A stretch of 55,057 nucleotides of DNA from Piromyces finnis finn (Eukaryota > Fungi > Neocallimastigomycota): positions 1 to 55,057 of the forward strand of contig MCFH01000104.1 of assembly GCA_002104945.1 (NCBI GenBank). The letters are read 5' to 3'. Made by a program: the position numbers and the translations under genes. This document shows positions 11,901-46,300 of this stretch, piece after piece (position 1 is the stretch's first letter; each line of letters begins with the position of its first letter). The notes under the pieces were generated by a model that saw only the letters and a list, made by a program, of their open reading frames with translations, was not told the DNA's origin and searched no databases.

Positions 11901-13925
11901 GATGCTAAGATGGCTGCTCAATGTCCAGATGCTTGTCAAGAAGCTGAAGAAAAACCAGTACAAGAAGCTGTTGCTTGTCCATTATGTCTTCACTGTATGA
12001 AATGTGATGCCAAGATGGCTGCTCAATGCCCAGATGCTTGCCAAGAAGAAGAAGAACCAGAACAAGAAGCTGTTCCTTGTCCAGCATGCCTTCATTGTAT
12101 GAAGTGTGAACCAAACTCTGAAATGGCTATCAACTGTCCAGATGCTTGTCAAGAAGAAGAACCAGTACAAGAAGCTGTTGCTTGTCCAAGATGTTACAAG
12201 TGCATGAAGTGTGATGCTAAGATGGCTGCTCAATGTCCAGATGCTTGTCAAGAAGAAGAACCAGTACAAGAAGCTGTTGCTTGCCCATTATGTCTTCACT
12301 GTATGGAATGTGATGCCAAGATGGCTGCTCAATGTCCAGATGCTTGTCAAGAAACTAAAGAACCAGAACAAGAAGCTGTTGCTTGTCCAAGATGTTACAA
12401 GTGCATGAAGTGTGATGCTAAGATGGCTGCTCAATGCCCAGATGCTTGTCAAGAAGAAGAACCAGTACAAGAAGCTGTTGCTTGTCCATTATGTCTTCAT
12501 TGTATGAAGTGTGATGCCAAGATGGCTGCTCAATGTCCAGATGCTTGCCAAGAAGAAGAACCAGAACAAGAAGCTGTTTCTTGTCCAGCATGCCTTCATT
12601 GTATGAAGTGTGAACCAAACTCCGAAATGGCTATCCACTGTCCAGATGCTTGTCAAGAAGCTGAAGAAGAACCAGTACAAGAAGCTGTTGCTTGTCCATT
12701 ATGTCTTCACTGTATGAAATGTGATGCCAAGATGGCTGCTCAATGCCCAGATGCTTGTCAAGAAGAAGAAGAACCAGAACAAGAAGCTGTTCCTTGTCCA
12801 GCATGCCTTCATTGTATGAAGTGTGAACCAAACTCCGAAATGGCTATCCACTGTCCAGATGCTTGTCAAGAAGAAGAACCAGTACAAGAAGCTGTTGCTT
12901 GCCCATTATGTCTTCACTGTATGGAATGTGATGCCAAGATGGCTGCTCAATGCCCAGATGCTTGTCAAGAAACTAAAGAACCAGAACAAGAAGCTGTTGC
13001 TTGTCCAAGATGTTACAAGTGCATGAAGTGTGATGCTAAGATGGCTGCTCAATGCCCAGATGCTTGCCAAGAAGAAGAAGAACCAGTACAAGAAGCTGTT
13101 GCTTGTCCATTATGTCTTCACTGTATGGAATGTGATGCCAAGATGGCTGCTCAATGCCCAGATGCTTGTCAAGAAACTAAAGAACCAGAACAAGAAGCTG
13201 TTGCTTGTCCATTATGTCTTCACTGTATGAAATGTGATGCCAAGATGGCTGCTCAATGCCCAGATGCTTGCCAAGAAGAAGAAGAACCAGTACAAGAAGC
13301 TGTTGCTTGTCCATTATGTCTTCACTGTATGGAATGTGATGCCAAGATGGCTGCTCAATGCCCAGATGCTTGTCAAGAAACTAAAGAACCAGAACAAGAA
13401 GCTGTTGCTTGTCCAAGATGTTACAAGTGCATGAAGTGTGATGCTAAGATGGCTGCTCAATGCCCAGATGCTTGCCAAGAAGAAGAAGAACCAGTACAAG
13501 AAGCTGTTGCTTGTCCATTATGTCTTCACTGTATGGAATGTGATGCCAAGATGGCTGCTCAATGTCCAGATGCTTGCCAAGAAGAAGAACCAGAACAAGA
13601 AGCTGTTGCTTGTCCAAGATGTTACAAGTGCATGAAGTGTGATGCTAAGATGGCTGCTCAATGCCCAGATGCTTGCCAAGAAGAACAAGAAGAACAAATA
13701 GCTTGTCCAAAGTGCTACCACTGTCTTGATTGTGATGCTAAGATGGCTGCTCAATGCCCAGATGCATGCAAACTTAAGAAAACAACAACTATTAAGATCA
13801 AACCAGCCATTAGAACTACTACTATTACCAAAAAAGTTTTATGTCCACTCTGTATCGAATGTATAGATTGTAGAAATAACTCAAACATGGCTAAGAACTG
13901 TAAAAGTGCTTGCAGAAAATTCTAA
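8997..13925 (+). CDS. Secreted protein: signal peptide, 2x CBM18 (hevein-like chitin-binding) domains and 42 tandem six-Cys modules
   Basis: Intronless 1642-aa ORF. Hydrophobic N-terminus MKFSKIALLAISILNVDISLA. Two 8-Cys hevein-pattern domains (CG...C...CCSxxGxCG...CGxGCQxxxGxC). Repeats such as CPRCYKCMKCDAKMAAQCPDAC follow. No C-terminal TM or GPI-like tail (ends ...CKSACRKF). Codon usage resembles the highly expressed SAM synthetase gene. Confidence 0.9.
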   Translation: MKFSKIALLAISILNVDISLAARCGKDNGLSCPSGYCCSKDGQCGKNETFCGVGCQPNYGLCNALLMTKKPKAIATKAPVTIKPTVKPISNDGTCGPNNGNKVCSNDECCSKFGYCGKGEVYCGSGCQSEFGKCKTETTKQVSNGACPRCYKCMKCDAKMARQCPDACKETEEKKPEEEQIACPRCYKCMKCDAKMARQCPDACKETEEKKPEEEQIACPRCYKCMKCDAKMARQCPDACKETEEKKPEEEQIACPRCYKCMKCDAKMAAQCPDACKETEEKKPEEEQIACPRCYKCMKCDAKMAAQCPDACKETEEKKPEEEQIACPRCYKCMKCDAKMAAQCPDACKETEEKKPEEEQIACPRCYKCMKCDAKMAAQCPDACKETEEKKPEEEQIACPRCYKCMKCDAKMARQCPDACKETEEKKPEEEQIACPRCYKCMKCDAKMAAQCPDACKETEEKKPEEEQIACPACLHCMKCEPNSEMAIHCPDACQEAEEEQEEEQIACPRCYKCMKCDAKMARQCPDACKETEEKKPEEEQIACPRCYKCMKCDAKMAAQCPDACKETEEKKPEEEQIACPACLHCMKCEPNSEMAIHCPDACQEAEEEQEEEQIACPRCYKCMKCDAKMARQCPDACKETGKKNEKSEKKDEKKDEKSEKKIEKNNEKTEKKNEKKKEKREFFGCPRCFKCMKCDAKMALQCPDACQDEQEQIACPRCYKCMKCDAKMAAQCPDACQETKEPEQEAVACPRCYKCMKCDAKMAAQCPDACQDAEEKIEKRGIFGCPRCYKCMKCDAKMAAQCPDACQDEQEQIACPRCYKCMKCDAKMAAQCPDACQETKEPVQEAVACPLCLHCMECDAKMAAQCPDACQETKEPKQEAVACPRCYKCMKCDAKMAAQCPDACQDVEGKIEKRGLFDLFACPRCYKCMKCDAKMARQCPDACQDAEEKKPEQEAVACPRCYKCMKCDAKMAAQCPDACQEAEEKPVQEAVACPLCLHCMKCDAKMAAQCPDACQEEEEPEQEAVPCPACLHCMKCEPNSEMAINCPDACQEEEPVQEAVACPRCYKCMKCDAKMAAQCPDACQEEEPVQEAVACPLCLHCMECDAKMAAQCPDACQETKEPEQEAVACPRCYKCMKCDAKMAAQCPDACQEEEPVQEAVACPLCLHCMKCDAKMAAQCPDACQEEEPEQEAVSCPACLHCMKCEPNSEMAIHCPDACQEAEEEPVQEAVACPLCLHCMKCDAKMAAQCPDACQEEEEPEQEAVPCPACLHCMKCEPNSEMAIHCPDACQEEEPVQEAVACPLCLHCMECDAKMAAQCPDACQETKEPEQEAVACPRCYKCMKCDAKMAAQCPDACQEEEEPVQEAVACPLCLHCMECDAKMAAQCPDACQETKEPEQEAVACPLCLHCMKCDAKMAAQCPDACQEEEEPVQEAVACPLCLHCMECDAKMAAQCPDACQETKEPEQEAVACPRCYKCMKCDAKMAAQCPDACQEEEEPVQEAVACPLCLHCMECDAKMAAQCPDACQEEEPEQEAVACPRCYKCMKCDAKMAAQCPDACQEEQEEQIACPKCYHCLDCDAKMAAQCPDACKLKKTTTIKIKPAIRTTTITKKVLCPLCIECIDCRNNSNMAKNCKSACRKF
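9435..13913 (+). repeat. Coding tandem array of 42 Cys-rich modules; 108-bp period in the 5' block, variable spacers in the 3' block
   Basis: Modules 1-10 start every 108 bp from 9435. Head variants are CPRCYKCMKC, CPLCLHCM(E/K)C and CPACLHCMKC; tail variants are DAKMA(A/R/L)QCPDAC and EPNSEMAI(H/N)CPDAC. Confidence 0.95.
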
Positions 13926-16830: not shown

Positions 16831-19800
16831 ATGCTATTTAACAGAAAAAAAAAAATAATTCCGGTTCCGGAACAACCTTCAGAGAGTCCATATAACAGTG
16901 CATCTTTCTTTTCAAAAATAACATATTCTTGGGAAAATAAATTATTTAGAATTGGTTACAATAGACCTTTACAACCTAACGATATCTATCTTTTACCATA
17001 TCAATTTAAAGAAGAAAATAATGAAAAAAAGTTTTATCATTATTGGAACGAACAAAAAAATATACAGGGAATACCAAGAAGTATATTTAAATGTATGTGG
17101 AAAATATATGGCAATAGTTTTATAATTGCTGGTATTTTAAAACTTATATCTGATATTTCCAGTTTAGTTACACCTATTTTTCTAGAATTATTATTAAATT
17201 TTCTGGAAGATTTTCAAAATGAAAGTTCAATAACGCAGTTACCAATCGAGAATTCTTCAACTATTTCATCTAAATCATGGCAGGAAATATTAAACCCTTA
17301 CATGGGATGGATTTATATTAGTTTAATTTTTATATGTCAATTAATTTATACATTGTGTGGAAATTATTTTTCTAGTATGGTTTTAGACATTGGTCTTTCA
17401 ATATATTCTACCATCAATGGAATTATCTACAATAAAACTCTTCGCCTTACAAATAAGGAAATGCAAAGCATTGGAGGTGGTAAAATTGTAAATATTATGT
17501 CCACTGATTCTTATCGTATATGGCAGCTCTCAGTCTACGGTCATTATATATGGAGTAGCCCTCTTCAACTTTTTATAATTCAGGCCTTATTAATACGATC
17601 TCTTGGTATTTGGTCATTTATTGGTTTATCTATATTTCTTTTTATTATTCCAATTCAATTGCTTGTGATGAAAATATTAATTTCTCTTCGAAAAAAAACA
17701 GCAAATTTAACCGATGAACGTGTTAAGAAAACACAAGAGGTAATTGGTAATATTCGTATCATTAAATATTTTGGTTGGGAAAAAATATTTCAAAGTATTA
17801 TCTTTAAACTTAGAGACAAGGAATTAAAACTTACAAAATATAGCATTATTACCAATTCAATAACTACAGCAGTTTTTAATGTAATTCCTTTTTTTGCTAG
17901 TGCTCTTACTTTTATTGCTTATTCTGCAAATGGTAATATTCTCACAGCTGCAAAAGTTTTTTCTTGTCATGCTTTATTTAATAAGCTTTGTAATCCACTT
18001 ACAAGTCTCTCTACTACATTTAATCAATTTACCAATGGTATTATTGGTTTGAAACGAGCCTCTTACATTATGAACGGTAAAGAGCTTGATAATTTAACAG
18101 AAATAAATCCTATGGCTGAGTTTGGCGTTTCTATTAGGAATGGAAATTTTAATTGGGAAGCCGGAAGACCAGAAGATATTCTTGAAAAAAGTAATAGAGA
18201 AAAAAAACTTAGGCATACGAATAACAAATTGAAAAAAAGACATCAGGAAGAAGAGAAACAAAGTGCATTAAAAATTGAAATGTCAAAGAGACGTCGTTAT
18301 AGTCAAGTTGAATCTCTTTGCAAAGATAATACTGATATCGTTGCGGATAGCAATAATTTAAATGGTGCTATTGCAACAGATGATATGCTTGATCAATCAA
18401 ATAATAATGATAATAATGGATTTTTTGAAAATGTATTAAAATCATTAAATTCTTTTTGTCTTCAAGATATTAATCTTTGTATAAAGAAAGGCTCCTTAAC
18501 AGCTATTGTTGGTGGTGTTGGTAGTGGAAAATCTTCATTAATTAATGCAATAATTGGTGAAATGAAGCAAGAATCAGGTCGTGTTATTATTGGTGGTTCC
18601 TATAGTTATTGTTCACAGAAAGCATGGATTCGTAATGCAAATATTCGTGACAATATTATATTAGGTAAACCGTTTGATAAGACTCGTTACGATGCAGCAG
18701 TTAAATGTTGTGCATTACGTAAAGACTTCCGAATTCTTTCTAATGGAGATATGACTGAATTAGTTGAAGGAGGTGCTAATCTTTCTGGTGGTCAAAAACA
18801 ACGTATTAATTTAGCAAGAGCAGTTTATGATAACAGTGATATTGTTTTTATGGATGATCCATTATCTGCAGTGGATGCCCATGTTAGTCGTTTTCTTTTT
18901 GATAAATGTATAAACGGTGCTCTAGCTAAAAAAACAAGAATCCTTGTCACACATCAACTTCATCTTCTCTCAAAAGTGGACTATATTGTTGTTATGAAGA
19001 ATGGTCGTATTGAGGAACAAGGACAATATAAGGAGCTTTTAATTAAAAATGGTGAACTAGCTCGATTATTGAAAGTCTCGGGTGATAATGAAAGCGAAAC
19101 TAAAGAAAATTACGAAGAATCGTTGGATATTTCAACTATTTCAGATAGTGATATTACCAAATGTGAATTTGATAGTAGTGAAAGTATTGCTAGTAGTATA
19201 AGTGAGGAAGATAATAAGAAGCCTGTTCAAGGTATTATTTCTCAAGAAGAAAGACCTACTGGATCAATAAAAACTAAAGTATATAATAACTATATTAAAG
19301 CCAGTGGTGGATATATTGTATGTATATTCATATTATTATTAGTTGGATTGACTCAAATAATAAAATTAGGTAGTGATACTTGGTTAGTGTATTGGACAGA
19401 GGATACTTTAGGTATGAAGACAAATGATTACATTCTTATTTATTTATTTTGGAATCTTGGTCAAACAATTGTAATTTTTATCTACTATGTTGTTATGGCA
19501 AATGTAGGCATTAAGGCTTCTAAGAGGGTACATAACAATGCAATTGATAGAGTACTGAAAGCACCCATCTTTTTCTTTGATTCTAATCCATTAGGCCGTA
19601 TTATAAATCGGTTTTCCATGGATCAAGACTCACTAGATAATAATTTATTTCCTACTTTACAAGTATTTTTAACTGGTTTTGGCTCTACTTTTTCTACTTT
19701 AGCTTTAATGCTCTATGCCTCCCCTATTTTAGGTGTAGCCGTGGTTCCCTTGCTTATTATTTATTACTTTATTCAACTATTGTATCGTCATACCAATCGT

Positions 19801-21054
19801 GAATTAAAGCGTCTTGATGCTTTGAAGAGATCACCCATTTACAATCACCTGTCTGAAACAATTAATGGTTTATCTACTATTCGTTCTTACCATGAACAAG
19901 AACATTTAATCAAACATAATCAATATTTAATTAATGAAAATAATCGTCCCACTCACCTTATACTAACTGCCGAGAGATGGATGAAAGTTCGTTTAGAATT
20001 AATTGGATCATTTTTAGTCTTACTTAATGGTTGTGCTGGGATGCTTTTAAAGGATTCTCTTTCTATATCTTTATTAGGTTTAAGTTTATCATATGCTATT
20101 CAATTAACATCTAATCTTAACACTTCCGTTCGTAATCTCTGTAAAACGGAAGTATATATGAATTCAGCCGAACGTCTTCTTCATTATGCTGAAGAAATAA
20201 AAATAGAAAAACAGGATGGTAAGGATGCACCACTAGGTTGGCCAACTCATGGGAAAGTTGAAATCAAAAATTTAACTATGAGTTATGCACCATTCCTACC
20301 ACCAACTATTCGTAATGTTTCTTTAAATATTAATTCTCATGAAAAAATTGGTATAGTTGGTCGAACAGGTGCTGGTAAATCTAGTATTATTATGAATCTT
20401 TTCCGAATGGTAGAACCTGAATTAGGTTCATTCGTTGCTATTGATGATATATCCATTCTTGATATGAAACTATCTAATCTTCGAAAAAATATTTCAATTA
20501 TTCCACAAGAACCTGTTCTCTTCTCTGGTACTATTCGTTTCAATATGGACCCACTTAATGAGCATACAGATAATGAAATTTGGAATGCATTAGAAAATTC
20601 TGGTGTGAAGGAATTAGTTATGAATATGGAAAATAAACTAGAAGCAGAGGTTTTATGTCATGGAGAAAATTTTAGTGTAGGTCAACGACAATTATTATGT
20701 TTAGCACGTGCAATGATTCGCAATAGTCATGTTATTATTTTGGACGAAGCTACTGCTTCATGTGATATTGAAACGGATTCTATTATTCAGAAAGCACTTC
20801 GTAATCATTTTAATGAATCAACAATAATAACAGTTGCACATCGTCTTAATACAATTATTGATTATGATAGAATTTTAGTGCTGGATAAAGGGGAGTTAAT
20901 TGAATATGATTCACCAAAAAATTTACTTTTTAAGTATAATTCAAATCAAGAATTAACTCCAATTCATAATACTGAATTTTCTAAATTAGTTGATGAAACT
21001 GGTGTAAGCAATTCTGAATTATTGAGACAAATGGCACTCTATAAAAAAATATAA
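16831..21054 (+). CDS. ABCC/MRP-family ABC transporter (YOR1/YCF1-like, no TMD0), intronless, canonical NBDs
   Basis: 1407 aa, TMD-NBD-TMD-NBD. NBD1: GGVGSGKSS, LSGGQKQR, VFMDD, VTHQL. NBD2: GRTGAGKSS, FSVGQRQ, IILDEAT, VAHRL. Also the N-terminal SFFSKITYSW and TMD2 GRIINRFSMD motifs typical of ABCC. Confidence 0.95.
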   Translation: MLFNRKKKIIPVPEQPSESPYNSASFFSKITYSWENKLFRIGYNRPLQPNDIYLLPYQFKEENNEKKFYHYWNEQKNIQGIPRSIFKCMWKIYGNSFIIAGILKLISDISSLVTPIFLELLLNFLEDFQNESSITQLPIENSSTISSKSWQEILNPYMGWIYISLIFICQLIYTLCGNYFSSMVLDIGLSIYSTINGIIYNKTLRLTNKEMQSIGGGKIVNIMSTDSYRIWQLSVYGHYIWSSPLQLFIIQALLIRSLGIWSFIGLSIFLFIIPIQLLVMKILISLRKKTANLTDERVKKTQEVIGNIRIIKYFGWEKIFQSIIFKLRDKELKLTKYSIITNSITTAVFNVIPFFASALTFIAYSANGNILTAAKVFSCHALFNKLCNPLTSLSTTFNQFTNGIIGLKRASYIMNGKELDNLTEINPMAEFGVSIRNGNFNWEAGRPEDILEKSNREKKLRHTNNKLKKRHQEEEKQSALKIEMSKRRRYSQVESLCKDNTDIVADSNNLNGAIATDDMLDQSNNNDNNGFFENVLKSLNSFCLQDINLCIKKGSLTAIVGGVGSGKSSLINAIIGEMKQESGRVIIGGSYSYCSQKAWIRNANIRDNIILGKPFDKTRYDAAVKCCALRKDFRILSNGDMTELVEGGANLSGGQKQRINLARAVYDNSDIVFMDDPLSAVDAHVSRFLFDKCINGALAKKTRILVTHQLHLLSKVDYIVVMKNGRIEEQGQYKELLIKNGELARLLKVSGDNESETKENYEESLDISTISDSDITKCEFDSSESIASSISEEDNKKPVQGIISQEERPTGSIKTKVYNNYIKASGGYIVCIFILLLVGLTQIIKLGSDTWLVYWTEDTLGMKTNDYILIYLFWNLGQTIVIFIYYVVMANVGIKASKRVHNNAIDRVLKAPIFFFDSNPLGRIINRFSMDQDSLDNNLFPTLQVFLTGFGSTFSTLALMLYASPILGVAVVPLLIIYYFIQLLYRHTNRELKRLDALKRSPIYNHLSETINGLSTIRSYHEQEHLIKHNQYLINENNRPTHLILTAERWMKVRLELIGSFLVLLNGCAGMLLKDSLSISLLGLSLSYAIQLTSNLNTSVRNLCKTEVYMNSAERLLHYAEEIKIEKQDGKDAPLGWPTHGKVEIKNLTMSYAPFLPPTIRNVSLNINSHEKIGIVGRTGAGKSSIIMNLFRMVEPELGSFVAIDDISILDMKLSNLRKNISIIPQEPVLFSGTIRFNMDPLNEHTDNEIWNALENSGVKELVMNMENKLEAEVLCHGENFSVGQRQLLCLARAMIRNSHVIILDEATASCDIETDSIIQKALRNHFNESTIITVAHRLNTIIDYDRILVLDKGELIEYDSPKNLLFKYNSNQELTPIHNTEFSKLVDETGVSNSELLRQMALYKKI

Positions 21055-22334: not shown

Positions 22335-22577
22335 ATAGATAGATATTTTCAATAATAATTAAAAAGAAAAAAAAGAAAATCTAAAAAATCTTAAGAAAAT
22401 TAGGAAATTAATGATATATTTAATACTACTCTTTATTTTTTTTATATCTCTACTTTTTATTTTCAGAATTTTTTTTTTTTTTTTTTTTTTTGTAAGATTA
22501 ATGGTAATTCTTTTAAATGTTATTTTTATTACTTTCATAAATAAAATCTATAATTTTTTCTTAGACATATGTTATAA

Positions 22578-24766
22578 TTATGAAAAGTCAGTTTTATTTG
22601 GAGTAAATGAGGTAGATGTAGTATTTGGATTAGTGAATACACTTTCTAAAGATTTTGGCATAGCGACATTCATAAAAGACATACTACTTGGAATGGGATT
22701 TGACATATTTAAGGAGTGCTTTGAATGAATGGTACTATCATATTTTTCCTCGATTTTTTCTTTATTTAATGATATTTCTATTTCTTTTATTTTATTCTTA
22801 AATTCAATAATTTGTTTGTCATTATCTGTTTGGTCAAATAATTTAAAAAGATAGCTTTCTGGATTGAGGTAAAGATTTTGTGGTGTATCAAATTCTTTAA
22901 TTTTACCTACAAAATAGTAATTAATTTACATTTACATTTATTAACAAGATTAATAATTGTATATTGATATTTTTTTTATAGTTTTTTTTAAAATAAATAT
23001 AAATTTTCTATATTTATTACCTTTTTCCATAATCATTACACGATCTGCTTTAACTGCATGTCTAAATTTGTTTGAGATGATTACTAAAGTTTTATTTTTA
23101 AACACTGTGTGAATAATTTCTTCTATCTTTTTTTCCGCCATTTCATCTAATGGGACTACTGATTCTATATAACAATAAAAACAATAGATCTTTTTAGTAT
23201 ATTTAAAACTTCATTTTATTTTTTTTTTTGTATTTTTTTTTTTTTTTTTTGTTGATTAATAATGTATTAAATATATTAAGTTCATATCTTACCATCATAA
23301 ACAACAATATTATTGTCCAGTACAACAATTCTTGCTATCATAAATAACATACATTGTAATAATGAAAAGTTTCTTCCGTTATCAATAATAATAGTTTCTA
23401 ATTTTTCAGGCAATAATTGAATGTCATCATATAATGATACTTTTCTTAAAGCTATTAAATATGAATTTAAATATAAACCAATGTGTTAAAAGTTAATATT
23501 TAGTTTATTCGGTATAGTATATTGAATTTATTATAAAATAAAAATGATTATATTACCATCCCAAATTTCCCTATCGGAATGCTCATTAAATGGATCTAAA
23601 TTGGAACGTACAGTACCTCCAAAAAGTACAGGTTCTATTAAAATATTTATAATTAAAAAGGTTGTTTAATAATATTTAAAGTATATATGAAATAATTATG
23701 AGTGCTTTTTTTTCATTATAATGAATATAATAAACAAAACATAATTTTACCTTGTGGAATAATACCAATATTACTTCTTAAAGTTTCTAAACGAATATTC
23801 TTTATATCAATTCCATCAACTTTAATACTACCTTCAGAAAGTTCTAACATTCTAAGTAAACCCATCATGAGGGTGGTTTTTCCACTGCCACTTGATCCAA
23901 GAATACCAATTGTTTCTTTTGGATTAATAGTAAATGATATAGATTTAAGAATAGCAACAGTATACTTATAGTAGCGAACTTCTACATCTTCAAATTCAAT
24001 TTTACCTTCAGTTGGCCAACCTTTTGGCACATTTATGAATTTTTTATCTGAATTTTCTTCCTTTGGTATGCGACTTGTATAATTTTGAAGAGTGGCACAA
24101 CTAGTCATAGCACTATGAACATCATAAATAGTACGGAAAAGCCATGGAAGATAAAGAATAATAGAAACAGCATTAGTTAAACTAAGACCAGCAACAGCTG
24201 GTGTCATTTTTTTAATAAAGAAAGTATTTTCCTTAAATATTACAATAAAGAGAGCTGTTAAAAAAATAAAAAGACTTGAAACAATATCAATATTGAATGC
24301 TTTCCATGTTTGAACGGAAGCCAATGAAAAGAAATATTTATGATTTTTATCAATATAATGCTTGTATTCTTTTTCAAATTCCTTTTGGAGTTGATATATT
24401 TTAATATTACGGAAACCATCTAATGTTGTTGTTAAATGACAGAATATTTCAGTTTTTGATTGCCCTTCTTGAATTTGAAGACGATGTTCTACTGATTTCG
24501 AATATTTTAATATAAGGGCAATAAGAATAATATATATTGGTAATGTTGCCCAGAAGTATGGAACAAATAAACAAACGATTACAACAGTACCCAATATTAA
24601 TGGACAATAATAAAGAAATTGAAGTAACGAATCAGGTAAAAATTCGTCAACCAAAAATAAATGTTTTGCAAATACTGATAAAATAGTACTAATAGGGGTA
24701 TTAGCAAAAAAAACCATAGGAGCATTTAAAATAGCCTATTAATTTTCGGAATAATTTATGTTTTTA

Positions 24767-24799
<33 letters not shown>

Positions 24800-27471
24800 G
24801 TTATTATTATTATTATTATAAAAATAGCATATAATATTAATTCTAAATACTTACTTTTAATATACCATTATGATAAGCAATGCTTTTTCTAAAAATAACC
24901 CAACAAAAGAATAATCCTCTTAATGAAACCCCTAAAACTAATGCTATAGCTAATACAGCATATATATAGATATATTCATTATCGTATTCTCTATCTATAA
25001 ACCATTTTAAATAATAATCTGATATTATAATATTAGTATATTTATTAATAAAATGAAAAATATAAATTAATTTAAATTTAATACTCTTAAAACGTACCAC
25101 TGAAAAATCTAATACCATGAACAGCAAAAAAAACTACAACCAAAAATACAGTAAGTAATGCACCAGGTGATGTTACAATATAACTTTTATAAGCTTCTAA
25201 ATATTTTAATTTAGTTGGAACATTTTCTTCTGATGTATTATTTATTGAATTAACGTTAACACTATTAACTGTGTGAATTGTCATTTGGTTTTGTTCGATA
25301 GTTTTATATAAAGTATCTTGATGAATAGATTTTGGTTTTCTTGTACCATTAATAAATGTGTGATTATTTTCAATAGCTTTGGACATAGTATATTCGTTAA
25401 GTTCATTTGTTTTTAAATTTTGAAGATGACTTACAGTTATTTCATTATCCATTTCAATGTTTGAATGTAAATCCATATCAACATTATATTCTTGTTCACT
25501 TGATTCTTCTTCTAAATTTAAAATATCATTTTGAAGTTGTATAACCTTTAACTTTTTTAATTGATCATAATTATCACACTCTATGATAGCACCGTTATCC
25601 ATAATCATAATTTCGTCAAAAAGTTTTAAATATTTTTTATCCTGGGTAAACATAATGACAGTTTTATCCTTAAAAAAATCTTCAATACAATTTTTATAAA
25701 GAAGACCTTCAATTGGATTTTCAAAAGTAAGGAATGGATCGTCCAAAATAACAATATCAGGTTGACTATAGAGACAACGAGCAATACAAACTCTTTGTTT
25801 AAAATTATTCGAAAGGTTTAAGTTTTCATTTGATATGTCATTAAGATCCTGAGGATCCATACGTGCAACGTCATAGTTAATGAAAGTTAAAGTTAATATA
25901 TGTTTATATAAGATTTCATCAAATTTTTCTCCTAAAATAATATTATCACGAAGAGATCCTTTTATAATCCATGGTTGTTGTGAAATATATCCTACCTTTC
26001 CATTCATATAGGCTGTACCCGATTCCAAAATTAATTGACCTAATAAAGCATCCATTAGATTTATACATGTAGCAATTTCACCAACCACGGCAATTTTATC
26101 TCCTCTTCTTACAATAAGATTAAGATAGCCAAGTTTTAACGGAATATTATTATCATAAATAAATTTTGCATCTTTCATGAAAATAGAAATATCCTGAGTT
26201 TCTCTACCATTTTCGTCTCTAATAATATCATAATTATCAATACCATTATTGAAAGTTTCTGGTAATACAAAGTATTTATCAATTTTTCTTAATGAAAAGT
26301 ATGCATCAATTGCACTTCTAATTGATGTAGGAAGTACTGAGAGTGGATAACGTAAACTATTAAATATTGAGAGAATGGTAAAAGTAATAGCTGGTGACAT
26401 TGACTTTTTTTCAATGGCATAATAAAGTACTAATGAAAAGAGTGTAGATATCATTGGTGCAACAAACACAATGATTAGTGATTTACAACGATTAAATATA
26501 ACCTTTCTGATTTTTTTAATTTCTTTATATCTAATTTCATTAACCTTGTCTTCAAAAAAGCGCTCCCATGAATAGAATTTAATTAGTTTTATAACTGTTA
26601 AAATTTCTGACATTAAACGTACACGATCTCTTATATTCTTTGTTGATTTTAAAGAATAAGTAGATGTTTGAATTGCTAAGTAAATTTGAACTGGTATAAA
26701 AATTATTAAAATAAACCCTATCGCAGGTAAAGATGATTTTTCAATTTCAAAATAAGCTAGTACACATATTACAATTGCTTCCAGTATTGATGACCATAAA
26801 TAATGAAGATTAACACAAACCTCTGCTATTCTATTACAATCATTAGATATTAAATTAACAATAACACCCATTCCATTTGCCAAAGCACTTAATGTTAGTA
26901 ATTTCCTATATATTAAAACCATTAAGCCAGATCTTACCTATGTAATCAATTTATTATATTTATCATTAATAAAGTGAAAAAATTACAAATTATTAAAAAT
27001 CTAATAACTTACCCTCATACCAATTTTTGTACATTGAATATGTAGTTGATTATGGCATATTGTAGAGAAAAGAAAAGTTAGCAGAAAAGCAAATGCATTT
27101 AAGTAGCCCATATATTCATCTGCAATTCCCTTCTTATAACTATCTATATAACATACAGCCTTTTTTACTAAATAATAAAAACCTGTCCATGTGAAAAATA
27201 TCCATAGTATCTCCCATATAGCTAAAAAAGAAAAACTTTTACCAAAAGCTCGTATAATAGCTTTAAATATTGAAGGATTTCCTTGATGTTTTTCAACTTC
27301 TATTCTCCATGCATTATGTAAATCTTTCCCTGTTTTTTTTGATGATTCATTTTTACCTAAATGAAATTTTAATTCTGAAAAATCTTTACTTTTTATTAAA
27401 TATATTAAACGATATACCCAAAGGTATAACATTTCTGATACAAAATTACTTGATAGTGAAATGTGATGCAT
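22578..27471 (-). CDS. ABCC/MRP-family protein with degenerate nucleotide-binding domains, 8 exons, ~1385 aa
   Basis: GT-AG exons that keep frame: 27471-27013, 26937-25098, 25018-24855, 24735-23751, 23634-23557, 23451-23293, 23164-23021, 22906-22578 (4158 nt). ABCC motifs present: [10 protein letters not shown]-like [59 protein letters not shown]. Confidence 0.88.
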
Positions 27472-29236
27472 TTTTTATTTAATATTTATTATGTAAAATT
27501 TTAAATCAGAAAAATGTGTTTTTATTACTTTTGTTGATTTAATATAAGTTTTTTTTTATTATTCTTATTGATTTAAGTTTTTTTTTTTTTATTATTATTA
27601 TTAAAAATCTTTAGTAAACAATTATTTTTTTTAATAATATTTTAAATGCAATTATATATTTTGTTTTGAATAAAATTATTGATTGTATACTAGATTATTT
27701 ACTTAATTTATATATATTTTTTATTTATATGTAATTTTTGGTGGTATATAAATTTTAATCTCAAAATTACATAGAAACTGAAATTGAATGAATAAATATT
27801 AATTATTTTGTCAGTTTATATTATTTAAAATGCAAATAAATATATATATATATATATTTTATAAATGTAAACTGAAATTGTGTATTATTATTCTCAAATA
27901 AATATAAAGAAAATAGATATTATTGATACATAAACAATTTGTGTACGATAATTGAAATATTAATTTTTGCTTCAATATGGTAACATTATTAAAATTTATT
28001 TAATCAATAGTAGAATCATTACCTTCTATTAATAATTAACATTATAGTTTTTATAATTATTAATAAAAGAATAAAATATATCAATAAAAAAATATAATTT
28101 TTATTGAAAATTCTGTATAATTATACAATTTCTAATTATTTTACTGAAATGAATTGGATAAATTCTAATTTTATTGGAAAAAAGTATAATTTTTTTTTTT
28201 TCAATGAATAATAAATTAGTTTATTCTTTCAAAATTATATACTTTAAATGAAATTAAAAAAGATTTGATTAAAGTAAATTAAGTTCAAATTAAATGGAGT
28301 TTATGATATATCGTTGATATAGATTATATATATAAAAGAAAAAAATAATAAAATGATATGTAAAATAAATGATATGTATATGAATTTTTAATAAAGCCTC
28401 ATATATTTAATATAATGATTTTAATTGCTCGATTAAATAATTATTTTTACTATATTATACATATATCAATTTTTAATATGTTCTTACATACATAGACCAT
28501 AATTCTTTTTCTAGAATTTTTATAATATTTTCCTTTTGGTCTTTATTTTTTTTTTTTTTTTTTTTCAAATAATTAAAAAAAAAAGTTTATAAAATTTGTG
28601 TAATATTATTATTATATGACATTTTTTATTAATTATAATTTACTTATAATTAAAATTTATTCACTTATTTAATAATAAAGATTTAGAAAAAACAAATATT
28701 GGTTGGATAAATCATGATATATTGAAAATAGAAAATATGAAGATATTTATTAAATTATATATATGCATAATTTCAAACCAATAATATTGTTCTATTTTTT
28801 ATTTTTTTGTTTTATAATAAAAATAATTATTATAAAGCAAATATATTATGTAAAATTTATTATAAAGATATTATTGAATTTATCATATAATGATATCTTT
28901 TATAATTATAAAAAAAAATATAGAGTTTGAGGTCTTTTTATAACTAAATCAATATTCCATAAAGTTAAAAAACTTTTTTTTATTATTATACAATTAATAA
29001 ATAAGCATAATATATACAAAATATACACTCAATATAATATTTATATAAATATTACACTATTAAATTGTACAGAAAATGCATTGGCTAAGAAAAATTAAAA
29101 ATAATTTAATGTATCAAATGAACAATAAGGGTTAGTTTTATTCAAAAACTTTAAATTACATAAATTTTTAATATAAAACTTATAACTCAATAAATTAATA
29201 ATATAATACATTAATGAAAACCTAATTTTACTCTAT

Positions 29237-29608
29237 TATCACAAATTACATTTATTTGGGATTGTATTATTTAGGAAAGGTGCGTCGTATTTTTGAGGGG
29301 TAGATTTTGATCCCCTCTAAAACGATGCATTTCCTAAATCTTGTATAATTAGATCTTATTAATCTTATTTTATATTTGTTTATGTTAATTTTTTGAAAAA
29401 TGGAATAAATCTAAGAAGGAAGTATCACAAATTACATTTATTTGGGATTGTATTATTTAGGAAAGGTGCGTCGTATTTTTGAGGGGTAGATTTTGATCCC
29501 CTCTAAAACGATGCATTTCCTAAATCTTGTATAATTAGATCTTATTAATCTTATTTTATATTTGTTTATGTTAATTTTTTGAAAAATGGAATAAATCTAA
29601 GAAGGAAG
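29237..29608. repeat. 186-bp tandem duplication covering the 3' end and 3' flank of the acyltransferase gene
   Basis: tatcacaaattac...ctaagaaggaag at 29237-29422 and 29423-29608. Each copy contains a ~70-bp imperfect hairpin (29270-29338 and 29456-29524). Confidence 0.93.
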
Positions 29609-30855
29609 ATTACAGTTGCTGTAGTAGTAAATACTAATGTTCCAAAAATAGGCATCCAGAAAAGTGGATTAAATGAAAGAGATGTTAATTTTGTAAAGCG
29701 AACTATTATATCAAGGACTGCCATATGAGCAAGATATATGCCAAAGGAACATTCAGATAATTTTAATATTAATTTATTAATAAATTTATTGTTTTCCATA
29801 ATATTATTAATCCAATTACTGAGTTTATACTTGAAGAATAAAAATACACCTAAAACTGTCATTGTAATATTTATGTTATTATTCTTGGAAAATTGTATTC
29901 TGTTATGTTTTTTTTGAATATAATTAGTACTAAATCTTAAAACATGCGTACTAATAAAGCCAACAATACCAATTATATAGAAATATGTAATATATTTTTT
30001 GTTTTTAAATTCTTGTGTATTTAATAAATATCCTAAGATATAATAAGCAGAATAATATCCATTTATTTCAAACATATGTTTTTTAATATAATCATCAACC
30101 AAGCTTAGATTAAAGTTAAAGAAAATCTTCATAAAATCAATGAAGGTTGGAATGAAATGGTATATAATAATAAAATAGATTACGAAATACCATGCTACAT
30201 CTCTCTTTTCTGTAATACATTTATAGATTGGTGTGAGTATATATAAGCCTATAACAAAAAATAAATACCATAGATGACCACCATTTTTACCTAAAACAAT
30301 ACCTGTAATAGCTGTTTTACATTCTTCCAAATTAAAATGATGTTCCTTTTTTCCTACATTTACAATATATTCATTAATAAGATTATAATATAATGACCAA
30401 AATACTAGACTGATGAACAATCTACGAATATACTTTCCGTATAAAACTTTCAAAGGTATTTTTTTCTTTGGATTTAAAAAGAGTGAGCCACTAATAAGAA
30501 TAAAAAGTGGAACACAACCTAATGGTAAACCATAATAAATAGATAAAACCATACCATTAAAAGTTTTAACATCAATATTGACGTAAAAAAAAGAACAATG
30601 AAGGAATACAACTAAATAGCAAGCTAATACTCTTAACCAATCAATCCAATAAACTCTTTTTTTTGAGTTTTGATTATTGTTATTATTTTTATTATTGTTG
30701 TTGGAAACATCTGGATTAGTTAATGATTTTAATTGTATATCATTATTGTCATTATTTTCATCATTATTTATAAGTATTTTTTCTTCACTATTATCATCAG
30801 CTATATTAATATTACTATCCTTAATGTAATTTAGTGATTCTGTTGAAACATTCAT
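29566..30855 (-). CDS. Acyltransferase family 3 (OafA/WecH-like membrane O-acyltransferase)
   Basis: Intronless, 429 aa, about 10 hydrophobic segments. Motifs WIDWLRVLACYLVVFLH, VPLFILISGSLFL, HLWYL and SFGIYLAH. Confidence 0.88.
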   Translation of the reverse strand: MNVSTESLNYIKDSNINIADDNSEEKILINNDENNDNNDIQLKSLTNPDVSNNNNKNNNNNQNSKKRVYWIDWLRVLACYLVVFLHCSFFYVNIDVKTFNGMVLSIYYGLPLGCVPLFILISGSLFLNPKKKIPLKVLYGKYIRRLFISLVFWSLYYNLINEYIVNVGKKEHHFNLEECKTAITGIVLGKNGGHLWYLFFVIGLYILTPIYKCITEKRDVAWYFVIYFIIIYHFIPTFIDFMKIFFNFNLSLVDDYIKKHMFEINGYYSAYYILGYLLNTQEFKNKKYITYFYIIGIVGFISTHVLRFSTNYIQKKHNRIQFSKNNNINITMTVLGVFLFFKYKLSNWINNIMENNKFINKLILKLSECSFGIYLAHMAVLDIIVRFTKLTSLSFNPLFWMPIFGTLVFTTTATVIFLLRFIPFFKKLT

Positions 30856-31611: not shown

Positions 31612-32902
31612 TGTTAATTTAGGTTTTTTTAATTATGTCAACTTTATTAATATAATTTATGATAAAGAAACTACTATTGTTACATACTATTCAAATTATG
31701 TGTATTTATATATTATATCGTGGCTTAAATAATTAATAAAAATACAATACATTCAAATATATTTAAATGCATCCAAATACATGAGCCACAATTTCCCATT
31801 TCTTATATTCTTACAAAAATATTACATTCTATAATTATATGTATTAAATTATAGAATGTAATACATAGAAGCTTAGCTTAATTTATTTATCAAATGTTAT
31901 TTGGCAATTATTATAGGATACTTCAAATTTAAATTAAAAAAAGTTAAAGAATCTAAACATTAATAACCAACAAAACTGTAAGTAGAAATTCTTAAAATCA
32001 TTTATTTTTTTACATAATTTTTCTAAATTTAAACACTTATATAATTTAATTATAAATACTTTGAAGATTTTAAATTATTTTTTTTTTTTTTTGTATATTT
32101 CTAAAAGAATCTAAAATTTAATCTATATATCTATATTCAAAAATAGTTATGGTTGTGACTCTAATCATGAATTAACTGTATTAAAATGCTTTTGGAAATT
32201 AATAATATTAAAGTTTATTTTTTAAGCTTAAAAAATCAACTTTAATATTTTTAATTTTCAAATATATAAAAAAGAAATAATTTAAAAAAATGAAATATTA
32301 TAGTAATATAATAAGCAATCAAAGTATTAGAAAGATATATATCCTCAATTGAAATGACAGAAAAATAACAACATTCATACCTAATCTTTTAAATTAAAAT
32401 AGTATAAACTCCAACTTAAAACTTAAAATTTTATATAATAAAAAAATTTTAATTTTTTGCAGGCCGCTTGCCATATATTACTATAAATAAAAATAATTTA
32501 CTAATTAATTTCTAATAAATAAGATATAATTTAATTTATTATTATAACAATATAATATATTCAAATTCGTTTTTGTTTATTTAATTAGAATCAACACTAT
32601 ATTTTAATGTTACACAATTTCGAATTAATATATTTCACATATAATTAATTATTTATTAATATATATAAATTAATTAATATTATATAATAATAAAAAATAA
32701 TAAACCAAAATATTTTATTTCTATATATAAATAAAATTATTCTTTTTTTTTTTTTTTAAAATTTAATTTTTAAGAGTAATTTCTTTTTTTTTAAAATTTT
32801 AATTTTTGAGAGTAAAATAATTTGGCATAATTAGATTAGTATACATTATTAATATACATATAATTGATATTCATAAATTCTTTTACAAAGAAAAATACTA
32901 TA

Positions 32903-34300
32903 ATGAAGAAATTGATTTTTATAACAATATTAGCAGGATTAAATGTATCAAAAATAACTGCTAAAGATTGTTTTTCACTTAAATTGGGTTACCCATGTTG
33001 TTCTACTACTACAACAGTAGTTACTTCAGATAGTGATGGCGATTGGGGTATTGAAAATAATAGTTGGTGTGGTATTGAAAAGAAAATGAAAATTAGTTTC
33101 CCCTTCTTTGGTGGATTTAATTGGAATAATAAAGCAATTAATGCTGCTTCTCCAAACATGAATGTTAATAATTTAAATATCAATAATAATAATAATGCAT
33201 TCAATGGTTGGGCATTCAATCCATGGAATTGGTGGAAAGGTAATTCCAATGCTAACGCCAACTCAAACGTGAATCCAAATACAAATTTTAATAGTAATTT
33301 TAATATCAATAATAATATAAATACAAATACTAATTTAAATACAAATAATAATGCTAATGTAAATTCCAATGTTAATACTAATACAAAAAATCCTAACACA
33401 AATAACAATAATAATATTAATGGAAATGTTAATATCAATAACAAGATTAATAATAATGGTAATACAAATATTAATAAAAATAATAATGCCAATAGTAATA
33501 CAAATACAAATAACGTTAACATTAATAATAATTGGAATACAAATACAAATAATAATGTTAATATTAATAAAAATAATAACACACAAAAGCCAAATTCAAA
33601 TACAAACAACAATAACAATAATAACAATAATAGTAATTCTGTTGGTAGTCTTCCCGATGTTATTGGTGGAAAATCAGGTGTTACTACAGCCTATTGGGAT
33701 TGTTGTGTTGCTTCTTGTTCTTGGGATGCTAACGTTTCGGGTAGTAAGCCAGTTAAAGCATGTCGTAAAGATGGAGTATCTCTTGTTACCGAAGAACTTT
33801 GGAAAGTTAAAAGTGTATGTGATAATGGTGATGCCTATATGTGTAATGATCAACAACCGATTGTAATTAATGAAAAACTTTCATATGGTTTTGCTGCTTC
33901 TCATGATCCATGTTGTTCTTGTCAAAGACTTCAATTTACTTCTGGTCCAATTAAGGGAAAACAAATGATTGTTCAAATTACTAATACTGGTTCTGATGTT
34001 GGTACTAATCATTTTGATATTCAAATTCCAGGTGGTGGTGTTGGTATTTTCAATGGTTGCTCAAAACAATGGGGTGCGCCAAATGATGGTTGGGGCAGAC
34101 GTTATGGTGGTGTAACAACAAAATCTGAATGTAGTCAACTTCCATCCCAGCTTAGAGCCGGTTGTGAATGGAGATTTGGATGGTTTGGTAGTTCTGATAA
34201 TCCAAATGTTGTTTATGAACGTGTTCAATGTCCAAAGGAACTTACTAGGATTTCTGGTTGTGTTCTTCCAGATGATGCTAAGCAAAAGAAAGTTGTTTAA
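32903..34300 (+). CDS. GH45 endoglucanase with an N-terminal fungal dockerin (CBM10/NCDD) and an Asn-rich linker
   Basis: ATG at 32903 gives signal peptide [20 protein letters not shown]. Dockerin [11 protein letters not shown]...[16 protein letters not shown]45 motifs TTAYWDCC and [18 protein letters not shown] retain both catalytic Asp; also WGRRYGG and GCEWRFGWF. Confidence 0.93.
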
Positions 34301-43374: not shown

Positions 43375-46300
43375 TCATGGAACAAAATTATGATCTCCAT
43401 TGGTTGCGCTGGCCCTCCTGGCCTGTCTTACTGTTTCTTCAGCATTGACGCTCTTGGATGTTGCTTCAAACCTTTTGAACATTGACCATTGCTGGCCAAT
43501 AGCAAAAGGCATGATTTTGGTTAGAAGTTCCGCGGTTACCGTCAAGAATGGTGCTCCTTCATTAGTACCAGATTGAATCTGACGCTTACAAAGTTCTTTC
43601 CATTCCCTTGAATTGTAATTAATATTGTTAAAACTTCTTCCCCCAAGAAGGAATTTAAATATTTTACTGCACACACTAGAATAATCATACACATTAATAT
43701 TCACCGGATTATTAGAACTATTACTATCATTAACTAAATTACTATCTAAATTAGAATTATTATCTTCACTATTGCTATCATTACTAATATTATTATTTCT
43801 ATTATTGTTATTATTACTATTGTTACTATTACTATTGTTACTATTACTATTGTTATTACTACTATTGTTACTATTACTATTAATGTTATTACTATCTCTA
43901 CTGATATTATCAATTTCATTATTATTGATAGGACTATTGGAATTACGTTGACTGAAAAAATTTAATAGCTGGACTATGGAATCATAATGTTTAATACGGA
44001 TATCTCTAAATGTTGGACAATCTAATAACCAATGTTTAATACTTTGATCTCCACACTTGCAACATGGACAGTAGTTAGGACAAACTGGATCAACAAATTT
44101 GGCAGCTTTGGCAACTCTAGCATCCAACTTGTATCCGCTTCTTGCTTTCAATAGCCAGTAGAAGCCATAGGCAAACTCTGGGTACTCATAACATAATTTA
44201 ATAAAATCTTTAGTTTCAATAAATTTATTATCATCATAATATTGCGCTTTGATTGAATTCCCTTTGAGATCTTTCCAATAAAAGTTTTTAACTGCTTTAA
44301 CATCTCCATGTTTCTTTAATTTTTTATCAAGTGTCCTACTTGATTTGCACCACGTGTATTTTCTAAATTTAGGAATGTAATTGACAAGGTGTGAGATAAT
44401 ACAATTTGAGTTTTTCCATTTGTTAAAACATCTAACCTGAGCTAACGCACATTTGGCTGACAGTGGAGGAATATTCAAATCTTTTGAAATAGAGTATAAA
44501 GATATAAACGATACAGCTTTATGAACTCCGGCAACCCATCGTATTCCTTTGTTAACATGCTTCTGAGCAATTCTAGACCTAGCTTTGTTGGATCCAAGTA
44601 ATGGTGCAAAGTATGAAACTCTGCTAATCACTTGTGAGTTAAGTACTAGTTTTTTGAAAGGAATAGGAATATTAGGATTTCTTAAGAATTTACTGACTGA
44701 GAAAAGCCCTTTCAAAACCTTGTTATTAAGAGCTTTAATTACTGGTTTAAGGGACAGATTCTTATCAAATGGAACACCAAGATAAGTATAGCAATCAGTA
44801 GTTGGAATGGGTTGTCCTGCTAAGTAAAATGTTGGATCTCTCTTGTTCTGATTTTCTATTGATTCAGGACGAATCACCATCGTTGAACATTTCTGGATAC
44901 CAAATTCCATTTCATTATACAAGGCCCATTCATTAACTCTTCTAAGCATCTTTTTTAAGCATCCTCTTGTTGGAGCACAAATAACTATATCATCTGCAAA
45001 AAGTCCACCACAGCATCGAGTGTCACCTAAACTGACTCCTAGATCTTCGCACTCTCTAAATATATCATTAATAAAGAGATTAAAGAGAATAGGAGAAAGA
45101 GGGCAACCTTGACGGACTCCTTTCTTCACATCAAAAGATTTCGAGAATTGTCCATCTAATTTGACATTAGCCTTAGATGTTAAATATAAATTTTTGATAA
45201 ATTGTAGACTCTTACCTCGGATTCCTAAACAATCTAATTTATGGAGAATATTACCGATTGGGACTGAATCGTATGCTTTCCTGAGATCTAAAAAGGCCAA
45301 ATATGTCTCTTTATTATCTAATTGACGTCTACGGCATATTTCTTGGATTGAAATGAAAAGACTAATACTTTCTTCCTTTTTTCGAAAACCAAATTGTTCA
45401 GGTCTAATGAAATTATTCTTTAAACCATATTCTGAGATTCTAGTGGTGACAATTTTGGAAATCAACTTAATACCATTATTGATAAGTGATATACCTCGAT
45501 AGTTATCACAATCTGTCAAATCTCCCTTCTTAGGAATAGAAACAATACTGGATTCATTCCATGAGTTGGGGAAATCTCCATCCCAAATACGGTTGAATAA
45601 TTTAAGAATAAAATTTAAACCATGAGCATCATTATCTGAAGTAGCATTACCAGAAGAATTATTATCTGTAGCATTATTAGAATCATTACTTGATGGAACT
45701 AATGCTTTGTAAAATTCAATTGGAATACCATCCGGACCTGATGCTTTATAATTTGGAGTAGTGAGGATAGCTGACTTGACTTCATCAATACTAATATCTT
45801 GGTTGATATCCCACTCATCAAGCATAGGAAGTGAAAAACGTTTATTCGTTGGTTCTTCATACCAATGCTCCAAATCAAGACTTATACCACTTGGGTCTGA
45901 TGCAAGATTTTCGAAATGATCATGCCACACATCTAGTTGTTCTTCTGTAGCAACAACTAATTCTCCATTTTTATTTTTAATTGGTTGAGCAATAAAGAAA
46001 GAATCTTTTCCAATTTTTGCAGTTTTCTTGATCCATTTCCAGGCCTTCTTAGGATTATGACTCTTCATATACTCACATCCTGTTTTAATCCAATGAAGAT
46101 ATTCTTGCTTCCTAAATTCATTACATCTTTTGTGGATGTAATCAATGAGTTTACGGTAGATTTTAATTCTTTTAATAAATTCATCTATATCATAAATTCT
46201 TTCTTTTTTAAATCTCTTATACAACTTCATTTTGATTTTTTGAAGATTAAAAATTTGTTGTGAAATATGAAATGAAGACTTTATAACATTATTTGCTGAA

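Follow-up and report, generated by a model that had tools for sequence, protein, structure and literature searches.

Departures from the standard pump are known among full-size ATP-binding cassette (ABC) proteins. In Pdr5 and Cdr1, fungal transporters of the PDR family (ABCG type), one site is naturally and thoroughly degenerate, to the point that the Walker A lysine has become a cysteine, and the second site, fully canonical, drives transport. CFTR binds ATP at its first nucleotide-binding domain (NBD1), has a working consensus site built from the LSGGQ signature of NBD1 and the glutamate and histidine of NBD2, and carries a phosphorylated R domain. In the sulphonylurea receptors (SUR), the TMD0-L0 region binds Kir6.x, both Walker A lysines are kept, and the second glycine of the NBD2 signature is kept as well. 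On the prevailing view, an ABC exporter cannot do without at least one canonical ATP site, and even the repurposed CFTR and SUR proteins keep one. Here we describe a gene of the anaerobic fungus Piromyces finnis, at 22578..27471 on the minus strand of contig MCFH01000104.1 (55,057 bases, all of which is called the window below). It encodes an ABCC protein in which both ATP sites depart from the consensus.

In ABCC proteins, ATP is bound stably at a degenerate site 1, composed of the P-loop of NBD1 and the signature of NBD2 (PMC7756269). Hydrolysis takes place at site 2, composed of the P-loop, Walker B glutamate and switch histidine of NBD2, together with the NBD1 signature (PMC7756269). The hallmark of the subfamily is an aspartate replacing the catalytic glutamate past the NBD1 Walker B, with site 1 as the single degenerate site (PMC7756269). 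Some members are not transporters: SUR1 and SUR2 (ABCC8/9) act as nucleotide-sensing regulators (PMC7756269).

Sequence and phylogeny place the P. finnis protein among the short, ABCC4-like ABCC proteins. An earlier sequence-only reading had treated its gene as a one-off in an early-diverging fungus. The host, P. finnis, is such a fungus, but the gene is no one-off: it belongs to an old clade found in zoosporic fungi, of which it is the most extreme representative, and the genome holds a second paralogue. To judge from aligned motifs, both composite nucleotide sites are non-canonical throughout this clade, and the anaerobic fungi have additionally lost the Gly-Lys-Ser of the NBD1 P-loop.

Results

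Gene structure and transcripts

Translation between stops yielded eight in-frame ABCC-type pieces on the minus strand. Joined, they form a coding sequence of 4158 nt (22578..27471), that is 1385 codons and a TAA, interrupted by seven introns of 75-128 nt, all GT..AG. This reproduces the open frame of about 1385 codons, in eight exons with canonical splice sites, that had been proposed from the sequence. Exon 1 (27013..27471, residues 1-153) encodes an L0-like N-terminal segment and the first transmembrane helices of the first transmembrane domain (TMD1), without a TMD0. Exon 2 (25098..26937, residues 154-767) covers the remainder of TMD1, all of NBD1, then the linker and the first part of TMD2; exon 3 (24855..25018) the TM7 region of TMD2; and exon 4 (23751..24735) the remaining TMD2 and the beginning of NBD2 as far as the Q-loop. 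The rest of NBD2 is split between exon 5 (23557..23634, the segment past the Q-loop), exon 6 (23293..23451, the signature and the Walker B through VVYD), exon 7 (23021..23164, the catalytic glutamate, whose codon is split by intron 6, the D-loop and the H-loop) and exon 8 (22578..22906), which encodes the NBD2 end, the C-terminal tail and the stop codon. All eight lie on the minus strand. Intron 3 consists mostly of an (AAT)n-type microsatellite (window 24754-24830, minus strand).

The product is identical to a public P. finnis protein of 1385 residues, ORX39513.1 / A0A1Y1UN80 (our record P0025), in which the eight exon translations follow one another in order, and which is annotated as 'P-loop containing nucleoside triphosphate hydrolase protein'. 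This record came from an exhaustive search of representative proteins using exon 2 alone as query, and it was used for all later full-length work.

Sampled words of a 5.2 kb stretch were present at 69-79% in four public runs from three studies, which is about the exonic share. In each run, a contig of 4.2-4.4 kb (in two pieces for one run) omitted exactly the seven modelled introns, the outcome of the splicing check that the sequence-only reading had called for. The contigs span 27544..22502, and the segments they skip are bounded by CT..AC when read on the plus strand. Although the run records say no more than 'RNA?', contigs lacking seven introns that are present in the genome must originate from spliced RNA. 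The window is extremely AT-rich (G+C 12-44%); at the local base composition, the stop-free run of 613 codons has a chance probability of about 3e-26. A gene-model artefact is ruled out by transcripts that match the model and by the identical public protein.

Domains and ATP-site motifs

Pfam profiles PF00664 and PF00005 match both halves of the protein, in the order TMD1-NBD1-TMD2-NBD2 of a full-size ABCC with the type IV exporter fold, and hydropathy peaks are found in both halves. Exon 4 scored 74.5 bits with PF00664 and 59.1 bits with PF00005, and exon 2 scored 60.7 bits with PF00664; for PF00005 the exon 2 score was only 31.6 bits, the Walker A part of the profile remaining unmatched. Human ABCC2, MRP1 and ABCC4 align with the whole of exon 2 (E 1e-76 to 1e-79), and motif correspondences were set from this alignment. 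There is no TMD0, as residue 154 onward aligns from residue 392 of ABCC2 or residue 169 of ABCC4, and only about 150 residues lie upstream.

All motifs given below are encoded on the minus strand. At the Walker A position of NBD1, where GxxGxGK[ST] is expected, residues 439-446 read GEIATCIN (26059..26082): the fourth and sixth positions, both normally glycine, the lysine and the serine/threonine are all replaced. The NBD1 signature, which should close the consensus site 2, is LSNNF (residues 528-532, 25801..25815) instead of LSGGQ. The NBD1 Walker B, IVILDD (25738..25755), has the aspartate that is the ordinary ABCC hallmark, and its H-loop, FTQDK (25636..25650), has a glutamine instead of histidine at the switch position.

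NBD2 is better preserved. Its Walker A, GSSGSGKT (23875..23898), and its Q-loop, IPQEP, are intact, as are the aspartate and glutamate of its Walker B, VVYDE (exons 6/7), and the aspartate of its D-loop, SVVPLD (23145-23162). The signature is altered to FSLLQ (23354-23368; [LF]S[VL]GQ expected), and in the H-loop, ISNKF (23064-23078), Asn1260 stands in place of the switch histidine. The A-loop aromatic residue is retained in both NBDs (FIY, VRY). All motifs quoted in the sequence-only reading were therefore recovered, with one correction to their interpretation: the NBD2 segment VVYDESVVPLD, which had been listed among the degenerate elements, has its Walker B aspartate, catalytic glutamate and D-loop aspartate intact.

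Site 2 departs from the canonical arrangement in that the NBD2 Walker A, aspartate and glutamate are present together with an LSNNF signature and a switch asparagine. That both ATP sites are degenerate is borne out, each composite site lacking residues that are near-invariant in other ABCC proteins (see below).

The structures of the two domains were predicted by AlphaFold2 with family alignments. The mean predicted local distance difference test score was 91.4 for NBD1 (residues 395-625) and 92.2 for NBD2 (residues 1060-1300), and the NBD1 model superposed on the solved NBD1 of CFTR, MRP1, ABCC6 and MRP5 with TM-scores (template modelling) of 0.82-0.89 and a root-mean-square deviation of about 2-3 Å. 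The ABC fold is thus predicted for both NBDs even though motifs have been lost, a prediction that has no bearing on ligand binding.

Two further regions are distinctive. The linker between NBD1 and TMD2 is about 115 residues long, with conserved repeats; two family-specific repeats, one with SKAIENNH, were read there from the sequences (25273..25389), and in relatives they read ISKMIERNQLSV and TIE.NQLTVHS. The C-terminal tail carries the motif MPKSLESVF (22635-22661), found family-wide. The duplicated linker element and the C-terminal MP[KR]SLE..F are non-catalytic and common to the degenerate clade and to its canonical sister clade; they may be regulatory or related to sorting.

Orthologues and a paralogue in anaerobic fungi

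Searching with the full-length protein returned full-length orthologues, 76-84% identical, in Piromyces sp. E2, Anaeromyces robustus and Orpinomyces sp., together with five environmental sequences. A search of Joint Genome Institute (JGI) metagenomes with exon 2 returned near relatives, including a 6.7 kb genomic contig with a whole orthologue (L014), and a metagenome scan by exon-2 alignment added one further orthologous contig (L016), the other ten loci being distant ABC genes. Spliced orthologue transcripts were found in metatranscriptomes (L015 and L016) and in Anaeromyces (L028); for Anaeromyces, an intron-free transcript contig stands against an intron-bearing genomic copy.

Across nine orthologues from Neocallimastigomycota, the NBD1 Walker A position is GEIATC[IV]N, invariant save for the Ile/Val alternation. 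The NBD1 signature is LS[NHYRD]NF, and the NBD1 switch position is hypervariable, with Q, S, H, R or C. In NBD2, the Walker A is GS[SN]GSGKT, the signature F[ST]L[LIM]QCM, and the Walker B with D-loop V[VI]YDESV[VI]P[LM]D; the switch region is IISNK in all nine, so that the asparagine is fixed. Signature position 3 and the switch position of NBD1, both contacts of the gamma-phosphate in ordinary ABC proteins, thus drift within otherwise frozen motifs.

The P. finnis genome also holds a paralogue (P0187) of 1475 aa, 43% identical, on contig C200 at about 199,800-207,000 (L013, plus strand). Its gene has many more introns, with at least 14 blocks, and its motifs are GDFASCST, LSPSQ and FVTQQS, then FTLSQ, VVLDEP and IIASQL. 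Together with P0188 and P0004, it forms a separate orthogroup.

Intron positions vary among close relatives. Intron 7 is missing in the 89%-identical orthologue L014 (L014:6241-6248), and the A. robustus gene apparently keeps just two of the seven introns (L027:10459-14730; L029). These differences suggest that introns were recently lost or gained in anaerobic fungi.

Selection and variation

The ratio of non-synonymous to synonymous substitution (dN/dS) was computed by the Nei-Gojobori method, comparing codons exon by exon. Between the P. finnis gene and L014, over all 1368 codons, the proportions of synonymous and non-synonymous differences were 0.52 and 0.065, giving a dN/dS of 0.077. By region, the ratio was 0.037 for NBD1, 0.050 for NBD2, 0.07-0.08 for the TMDs, 0.11 for the linker and 0.26 for the C-terminal tail. 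Values of 0.065 and 0.062 were obtained against L015 and Piromyces sp. E2, respectively, and a value of 0.18 against A. robustus, where dS is probably saturated. Within the protein, constraint is strongest in the two NBDs (0.037-0.054 for NBD1, 0.04-0.05 for NBD2).

A second isolate (run X4) showed six single-base differences, all transitions, at window positions 22606, 23133, 23351, 24235, 25579 and 27211. Five are synonymous, and the sole amino-acid change, Phe1377 to Ser, falls in the C-terminal tail. Given that 20% of single changes, or 33% of transitions, are synonymous, five out of six has a probability of 0.002-0.018. We conclude that the gene is under strong purifying selection.

These results bear on the simplest alternative, namely that the gene is a decaying or recently disabled paralogue, or that its odd motifs come from a wrong gene model. 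In its favour, the genome has many other canonical ABCC genes, one of them just 1.5 kb away, and AT-biased mutation pressure favours changes of the Gly-to-Asn type. The data speak otherwise on every count. Spliced transcripts agree exactly with the model, a stop-free frame of full length has a probability of about 1e-58 by chance, and dN/dS is 0.06-0.08, lowest in the NBDs. Moreover, the same motif states are found in four genera and in metagenomes, and the clade (described below) is older than the split between anaerobic fungi and chytrids. We give this alternative almost no credence: a pseudogene is ruled out by the open frame, the spliced transcripts and the dN/dS values. The sequence-only reading had argued from the open frame against simple decay, and had proposed orthologues as a check; with a dN/dS of 0.06-0.08 overall, lower still in both NBDs, and with Piromyces sp. 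E2, Anaeromyces, Orpinomyces and metagenome orthologues sharing the substitutions under purifying selection, it was right on both points.

A clade with two non-canonical sites

The best 150 representatives were all ABCC-like, with the P. finnis protein nested among them, and the nearest non-fungal proteins were ABCC4-like proteins of animals. In maximum-likelihood trees, the Neocallimastigomycota proteins and a set of Chytridiomycota proteins form one group (support 100 in the Shimodaira-Hasegawa-like approximate likelihood ratio test, SH-aLRT). Its chytrid genera are Phlyctochytrium, Spizellomyces, Cladochytrium, Chytriomyces, Caulochytrium, Homolaphlyctis, Synchytrium, Gorgonomyces, Dinochytrium, Nowakowskiella, Entophlyctis and Terramyces, and it also includes Batrachochytrium dendrobatidis and B. 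salamandrivorans. The sister of this clade (support 99) comes from Mortierellomycota, Glomeromycota and Basidiobolus and has a canonical NBD2; both are nested within canonical short ABCC proteins. The clade is therefore older than the split between anaerobic fungi and chytrids.

Motifs were tabulated in 133 full-length ABCC representatives, with 125 outside the clade and nine clade members. Of the proteins outside the clade, 124 of 125 carry the second glycine of the NBD1 signature, against none of eight inside; for the NBD2 signature, this glycine occurs in 124/124 outside versus 1/9 inside. The NBD2 switch histidine, found in 122 of 123 outside, is absent from all nine members, which have serine (5), threonine (3) or asparagine (1). 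At the NBD1 switch position, histidine (98), asparagine (25) and glutamine (2) occur outside, and glutamine in 9/9 inside. The NBD1 Walker A lysine, invariant outside (125/125), is a lysine in six members, an arginine in two and an isoleucine in one.

Other residues of NBD2 behave in the opposite way. Its Walker A lysine is present in 125/125 outside and 8/8 inside (one model is gapped there), and its Walker B aspartate and glutamate in 124/124 each outside and 9/9 each inside; both are also invariant in a 40-sequence NBD2 alignment. The Q-loop glutamine is kept in the clade except in two divergent members, and the signature of the chytrid members retains its Ser/Thr and Gln (L[ST]xxQ). Clade members are thus recognised by the lack of the second NBD1-signature glycine, an NBD2 histidine changed to Ser, Thr or Asn, and a consensus glutamine at the NBD1 switch, combined with a conserved NBD2 lysine and Asp-Glu pair. 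Canonical relatives coexist in the same chytrid genera, for instance in Terramyces (P0250: LSGGQ, IAHRL), so that the motif pattern cannot be a lineage-wide drift.

Retention of the NBD2 residues weighs on a second alternative, in which the protein would have a nucleotide-independent role, as a scaffold, a facilitator for lipids or solutes, or a partner of a membrane protein, its NBDs serving as folded interaction modules. An NBD1 that has no P-loop and is nevertheless strongly constrained (dN/dS 0.037-0.054), an altered P-loop sequence that is invariant, and non-catalytic motifs conserved family-wide, in the linker and as the C-terminal MP[KR]SLE..F, would all suit such a role. Under this hypothesis, however, the NBD2 lysine, aspartate and glutamate should have drifted like the residues of site 1, yet they are kept where covered. 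We hold a nucleotide-independent role to be improbable: because these three residues are kept wherever the models cover them, nucleotide would still be part of the function.

Within the clade, the anaerobic-fungus sequences fall into two paralogue groups, copy A, to which the P. finnis ABCC gene belongs, and copy B, which are sisters (support 100). It was therefore in the anaerobic-fungus lineage that the gene was duplicated and the NBD1 P-loop lost (GEIATC, GDFASC). The stem of copy A measures 0.9 substitutions per site and its tips 0.03-0.18, which points to a phase of rapid change and to tight constraint thereafter.

Genomic surroundings

The nearest ABCC gene lies in the window itself, at 16831-21054 on the plus strand, tail to tail with the degenerate gene and about 1.5 kb away. 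It is intronless and encodes 1407 aa with canonical motifs (GSGKSS, LSGGQKQR and VTHQ in NBD1; GAGKSS, FSVGQRQL, LDEAT and VAHRL in NBD2), and its G+C content is about 0.31, versus 0.25 for the degenerate gene. Several further ABCC genes of the P. finnis genome are likewise single long open reading frames, of 1346-1415 aa. The idea that the degenerate protein pairs with its canonical neighbour, examined through conserved synteny, found no support: no ABCC gene adjoins the paralogue on contig C200, and the orthologues of A. robustus and Piromyces sp. E2 lie at contig ends, with an unreadable downstream side.

Elsewhere in the window, we found genes for a secreted cysteine-rich protein with 42 repeats (8997-13925), an acyltransferase-3 family membrane protein (29566-30855, minus strand), a GH45 cellulase with a CBM10 (dockerin-type) module (32864-34300, plus strand) and an S-adenosylmethionine synthetase (49733-50734, minus strand). 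A LINE-like retroelement (43375-47325, minus strand) has a 1316-aa reading frame, still open, with a reverse transcriptase and a weak endonuclease/exonuclease/phosphatase match. No sign of a functional cluster was seen among the window neighbours of the ABCC gene.

Discussion

How a protein with such motifs might work

Put together, the motifs suggest that the gene probably encodes a repurposed ABCC or an unorthodox pump. The NBD1 P-loop would no longer hold ATP, because its lysine, glycines and serine are absent and the signature that faces it is altered; the 'glue' site 1 of ordinary ABCC proteins would be gone. Mg-ATP would still bind the head formed by NBD2, where the residues needed for binding are all retained. 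Site 2, because the switch histidine is missing and LSNNF faces it instead of LSGGQ, would be unable to close and fire normally, and hydrolysis would be lost or very slow. With it, the standard cycle, in which two ATP molecules are sandwiched and the one at site 2 is hydrolysed, would also be lost or very slow. Under such conditions, a long-lived occupancy of NBD2 by nucleotide could act as a switch setting the conformation of the transmembrane domains. Such a change of role would parallel the origin of CFTR and SUR from ABCC pumps. After the duplication in anaerobic fungi, copy A would have diverged fast and then frozen, which fits a new or narrowed role. We regard it as about evenly balanced whether the protein is such a switch, working as a gate, facilitator or regulator and not as a fast ATP-driven exporter.

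Extending this to the clade is more tentative: an old, ABCC4-derived family of zoosporic fungi, the amphibian pathogen Batrachochytrium among them, could have given up pumping driven by ATP hydrolysis and now consist of channels, facilitators or regulators gated by ATP occupancy. It would have done so without any link to the origins of CFTR and SUR, and the anaerobic gut fungi, having gone furthest, would operate it with one nucleotide-binding head. Overall, the data bear out part of the interpretation first drawn from the window. The gene is real and conserved and, by its motifs, odd at both sites; its non-pumping nature is something that we infer.

The strongest competitor keeps the transport function. 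An ATP-driven exporter of an unorthodox kind could hydrolyse ATP at NBD2 only, with an asparagine (serine or threonine in chytrids) doing the work of the histidine and the altered NBD1 signature closing the site sufficiently, and use NBD1 as a purely structural partner. The NBD2 glutamate is the best argument for it, being kept with the lysine and aspartate in all covered clade members, next to a Q-loop glutamine present in all save two divergent ones. NBD2 is also the best conserved domain, with 44-49% identity to canonical relatives versus 27-35% for NBD1, and a dN/dS of 0.04-0.05; the histidine is always replaced by Ser, Thr or Asn, and the chytrid signature is still L[ST]xxQ. On the other hand, the second signature glycine and the switch histidine are found in 124/125 and 122/123 of the other ABCC proteins, meaning that pumping selects strongly for both. 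The LSxNF of the P. finnis orthogroup also drops the glutamine, and tolerates the bulky or charged residues H, Y, R and D at position 3. Finally, site 1 would be unable to hold ATP, so that the usual ABCC 'glue' (PMC7756269) would be absent. On balance we find a pump running on a single unorthodox site less likely than the switch, but a serious rival to it.

Several points weigh against the occupancy switch that we favour. The loss of function is read from motifs alone. The catalytic glutamate, the Walker B aspartate and the Walker A lysine of NBD2, kept in all covered members, are what would be expected if hydrolysis were still selected, and the substitute for the switch histidine is always a small, hydrogen-bonding residue (Ser, Thr, Asn) that could partly replace it. 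For some single substitutions in the H-loop or signature of CFTR and P-glycoprotein, the effect is a slower cycle and not its abolition. With dS close to saturation and a composition so strongly AT-biased, the dN/dS estimates may be distorted. Lastly, NBD1 is strongly constrained, altered P-loop included, and so must have a specific role, which the switch model leaves unexplained.

Whichever of these holds, the clade has preserved a full-size ABCC under strong purifying selection from before the divergence of anaerobic fungi and chytrids, with key residues exchanged at both sites, and it constitutes a natural experiment on the role of an NBD that is not a conventional motor. It offers a testable case, either of a third independent repurposing of an ABCC protein, or of an ATP site that works without its switch histidine and signature glycines. 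Members exist in genetically tractable chytrids, Spizellomyces punctatus (SPPG_01856) and B. dendrobatidis. The labels currently attached to clade proteins, 'P-loop NTPase' or 'multidrug resistance-associated protein 1/4', probably overstate their function. In the literature searched, whose coverage is incomplete, we found no account of the clade, nor of any full-size ABCC protein that is non-canonical at both sites.

Comparison with known systems

With the ABCC4/MRP4-type exporters, the P. finnis protein shares the domain order without TMD0 and the aspartate past the NBD1 Walker B. It differs in having none of the three features that these exporters keep, the GxxGxGKS and the LSGGQ of NBD1 and the switch histidine of NBD2. 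The proteins of the sister clade, named 'multidrug resistance-associated protein 4' (Podila KAF9384264.1, Rhizophagus), are closer. They have the linker repeats and the MP[KR]SLE..F motif, and they already have an LSLGQ signature and a switch asparagine in NBD1. Unlike the P. finnis protein, they keep the NBD1 GKSS and the second signature glycine, as well as FSLGQ, LDEAT and IAHRL in NBD2.

CFTR (ABCC7) is an ABCC turned non-pump, as our protein may be, and its NBD1 is among the best structural matches of the predicted NBD1 (TM-score 0.82-0.85); the H-loop of CFTR NBD1 likewise departs from the consensus (PMC7756269). In sequence, CFTR chains are more distant, matching exon 2 with E values of about 1e-43 to 1e-47 versus 1e-76 to 1e-79 for ABCC2, MRP1 and ABCC4. 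From SUR, the P. finnis protein differs by having no TMD0. An orthologue of CFTR or SUR is ruled out by this absence, by the weaker CFTR matches and by the ABCC4-like nature of the nearest non-fungal proteins.

The likeness to CFTR and SUR is limited to a possible departure from pumping, and unlike both, the P. finnis protein has no canonical site. The PDR pumps differ in subfamily and topology, and where they combine a degenerate site with a canonical one, in the P. finnis protein neither site reads as canonical.

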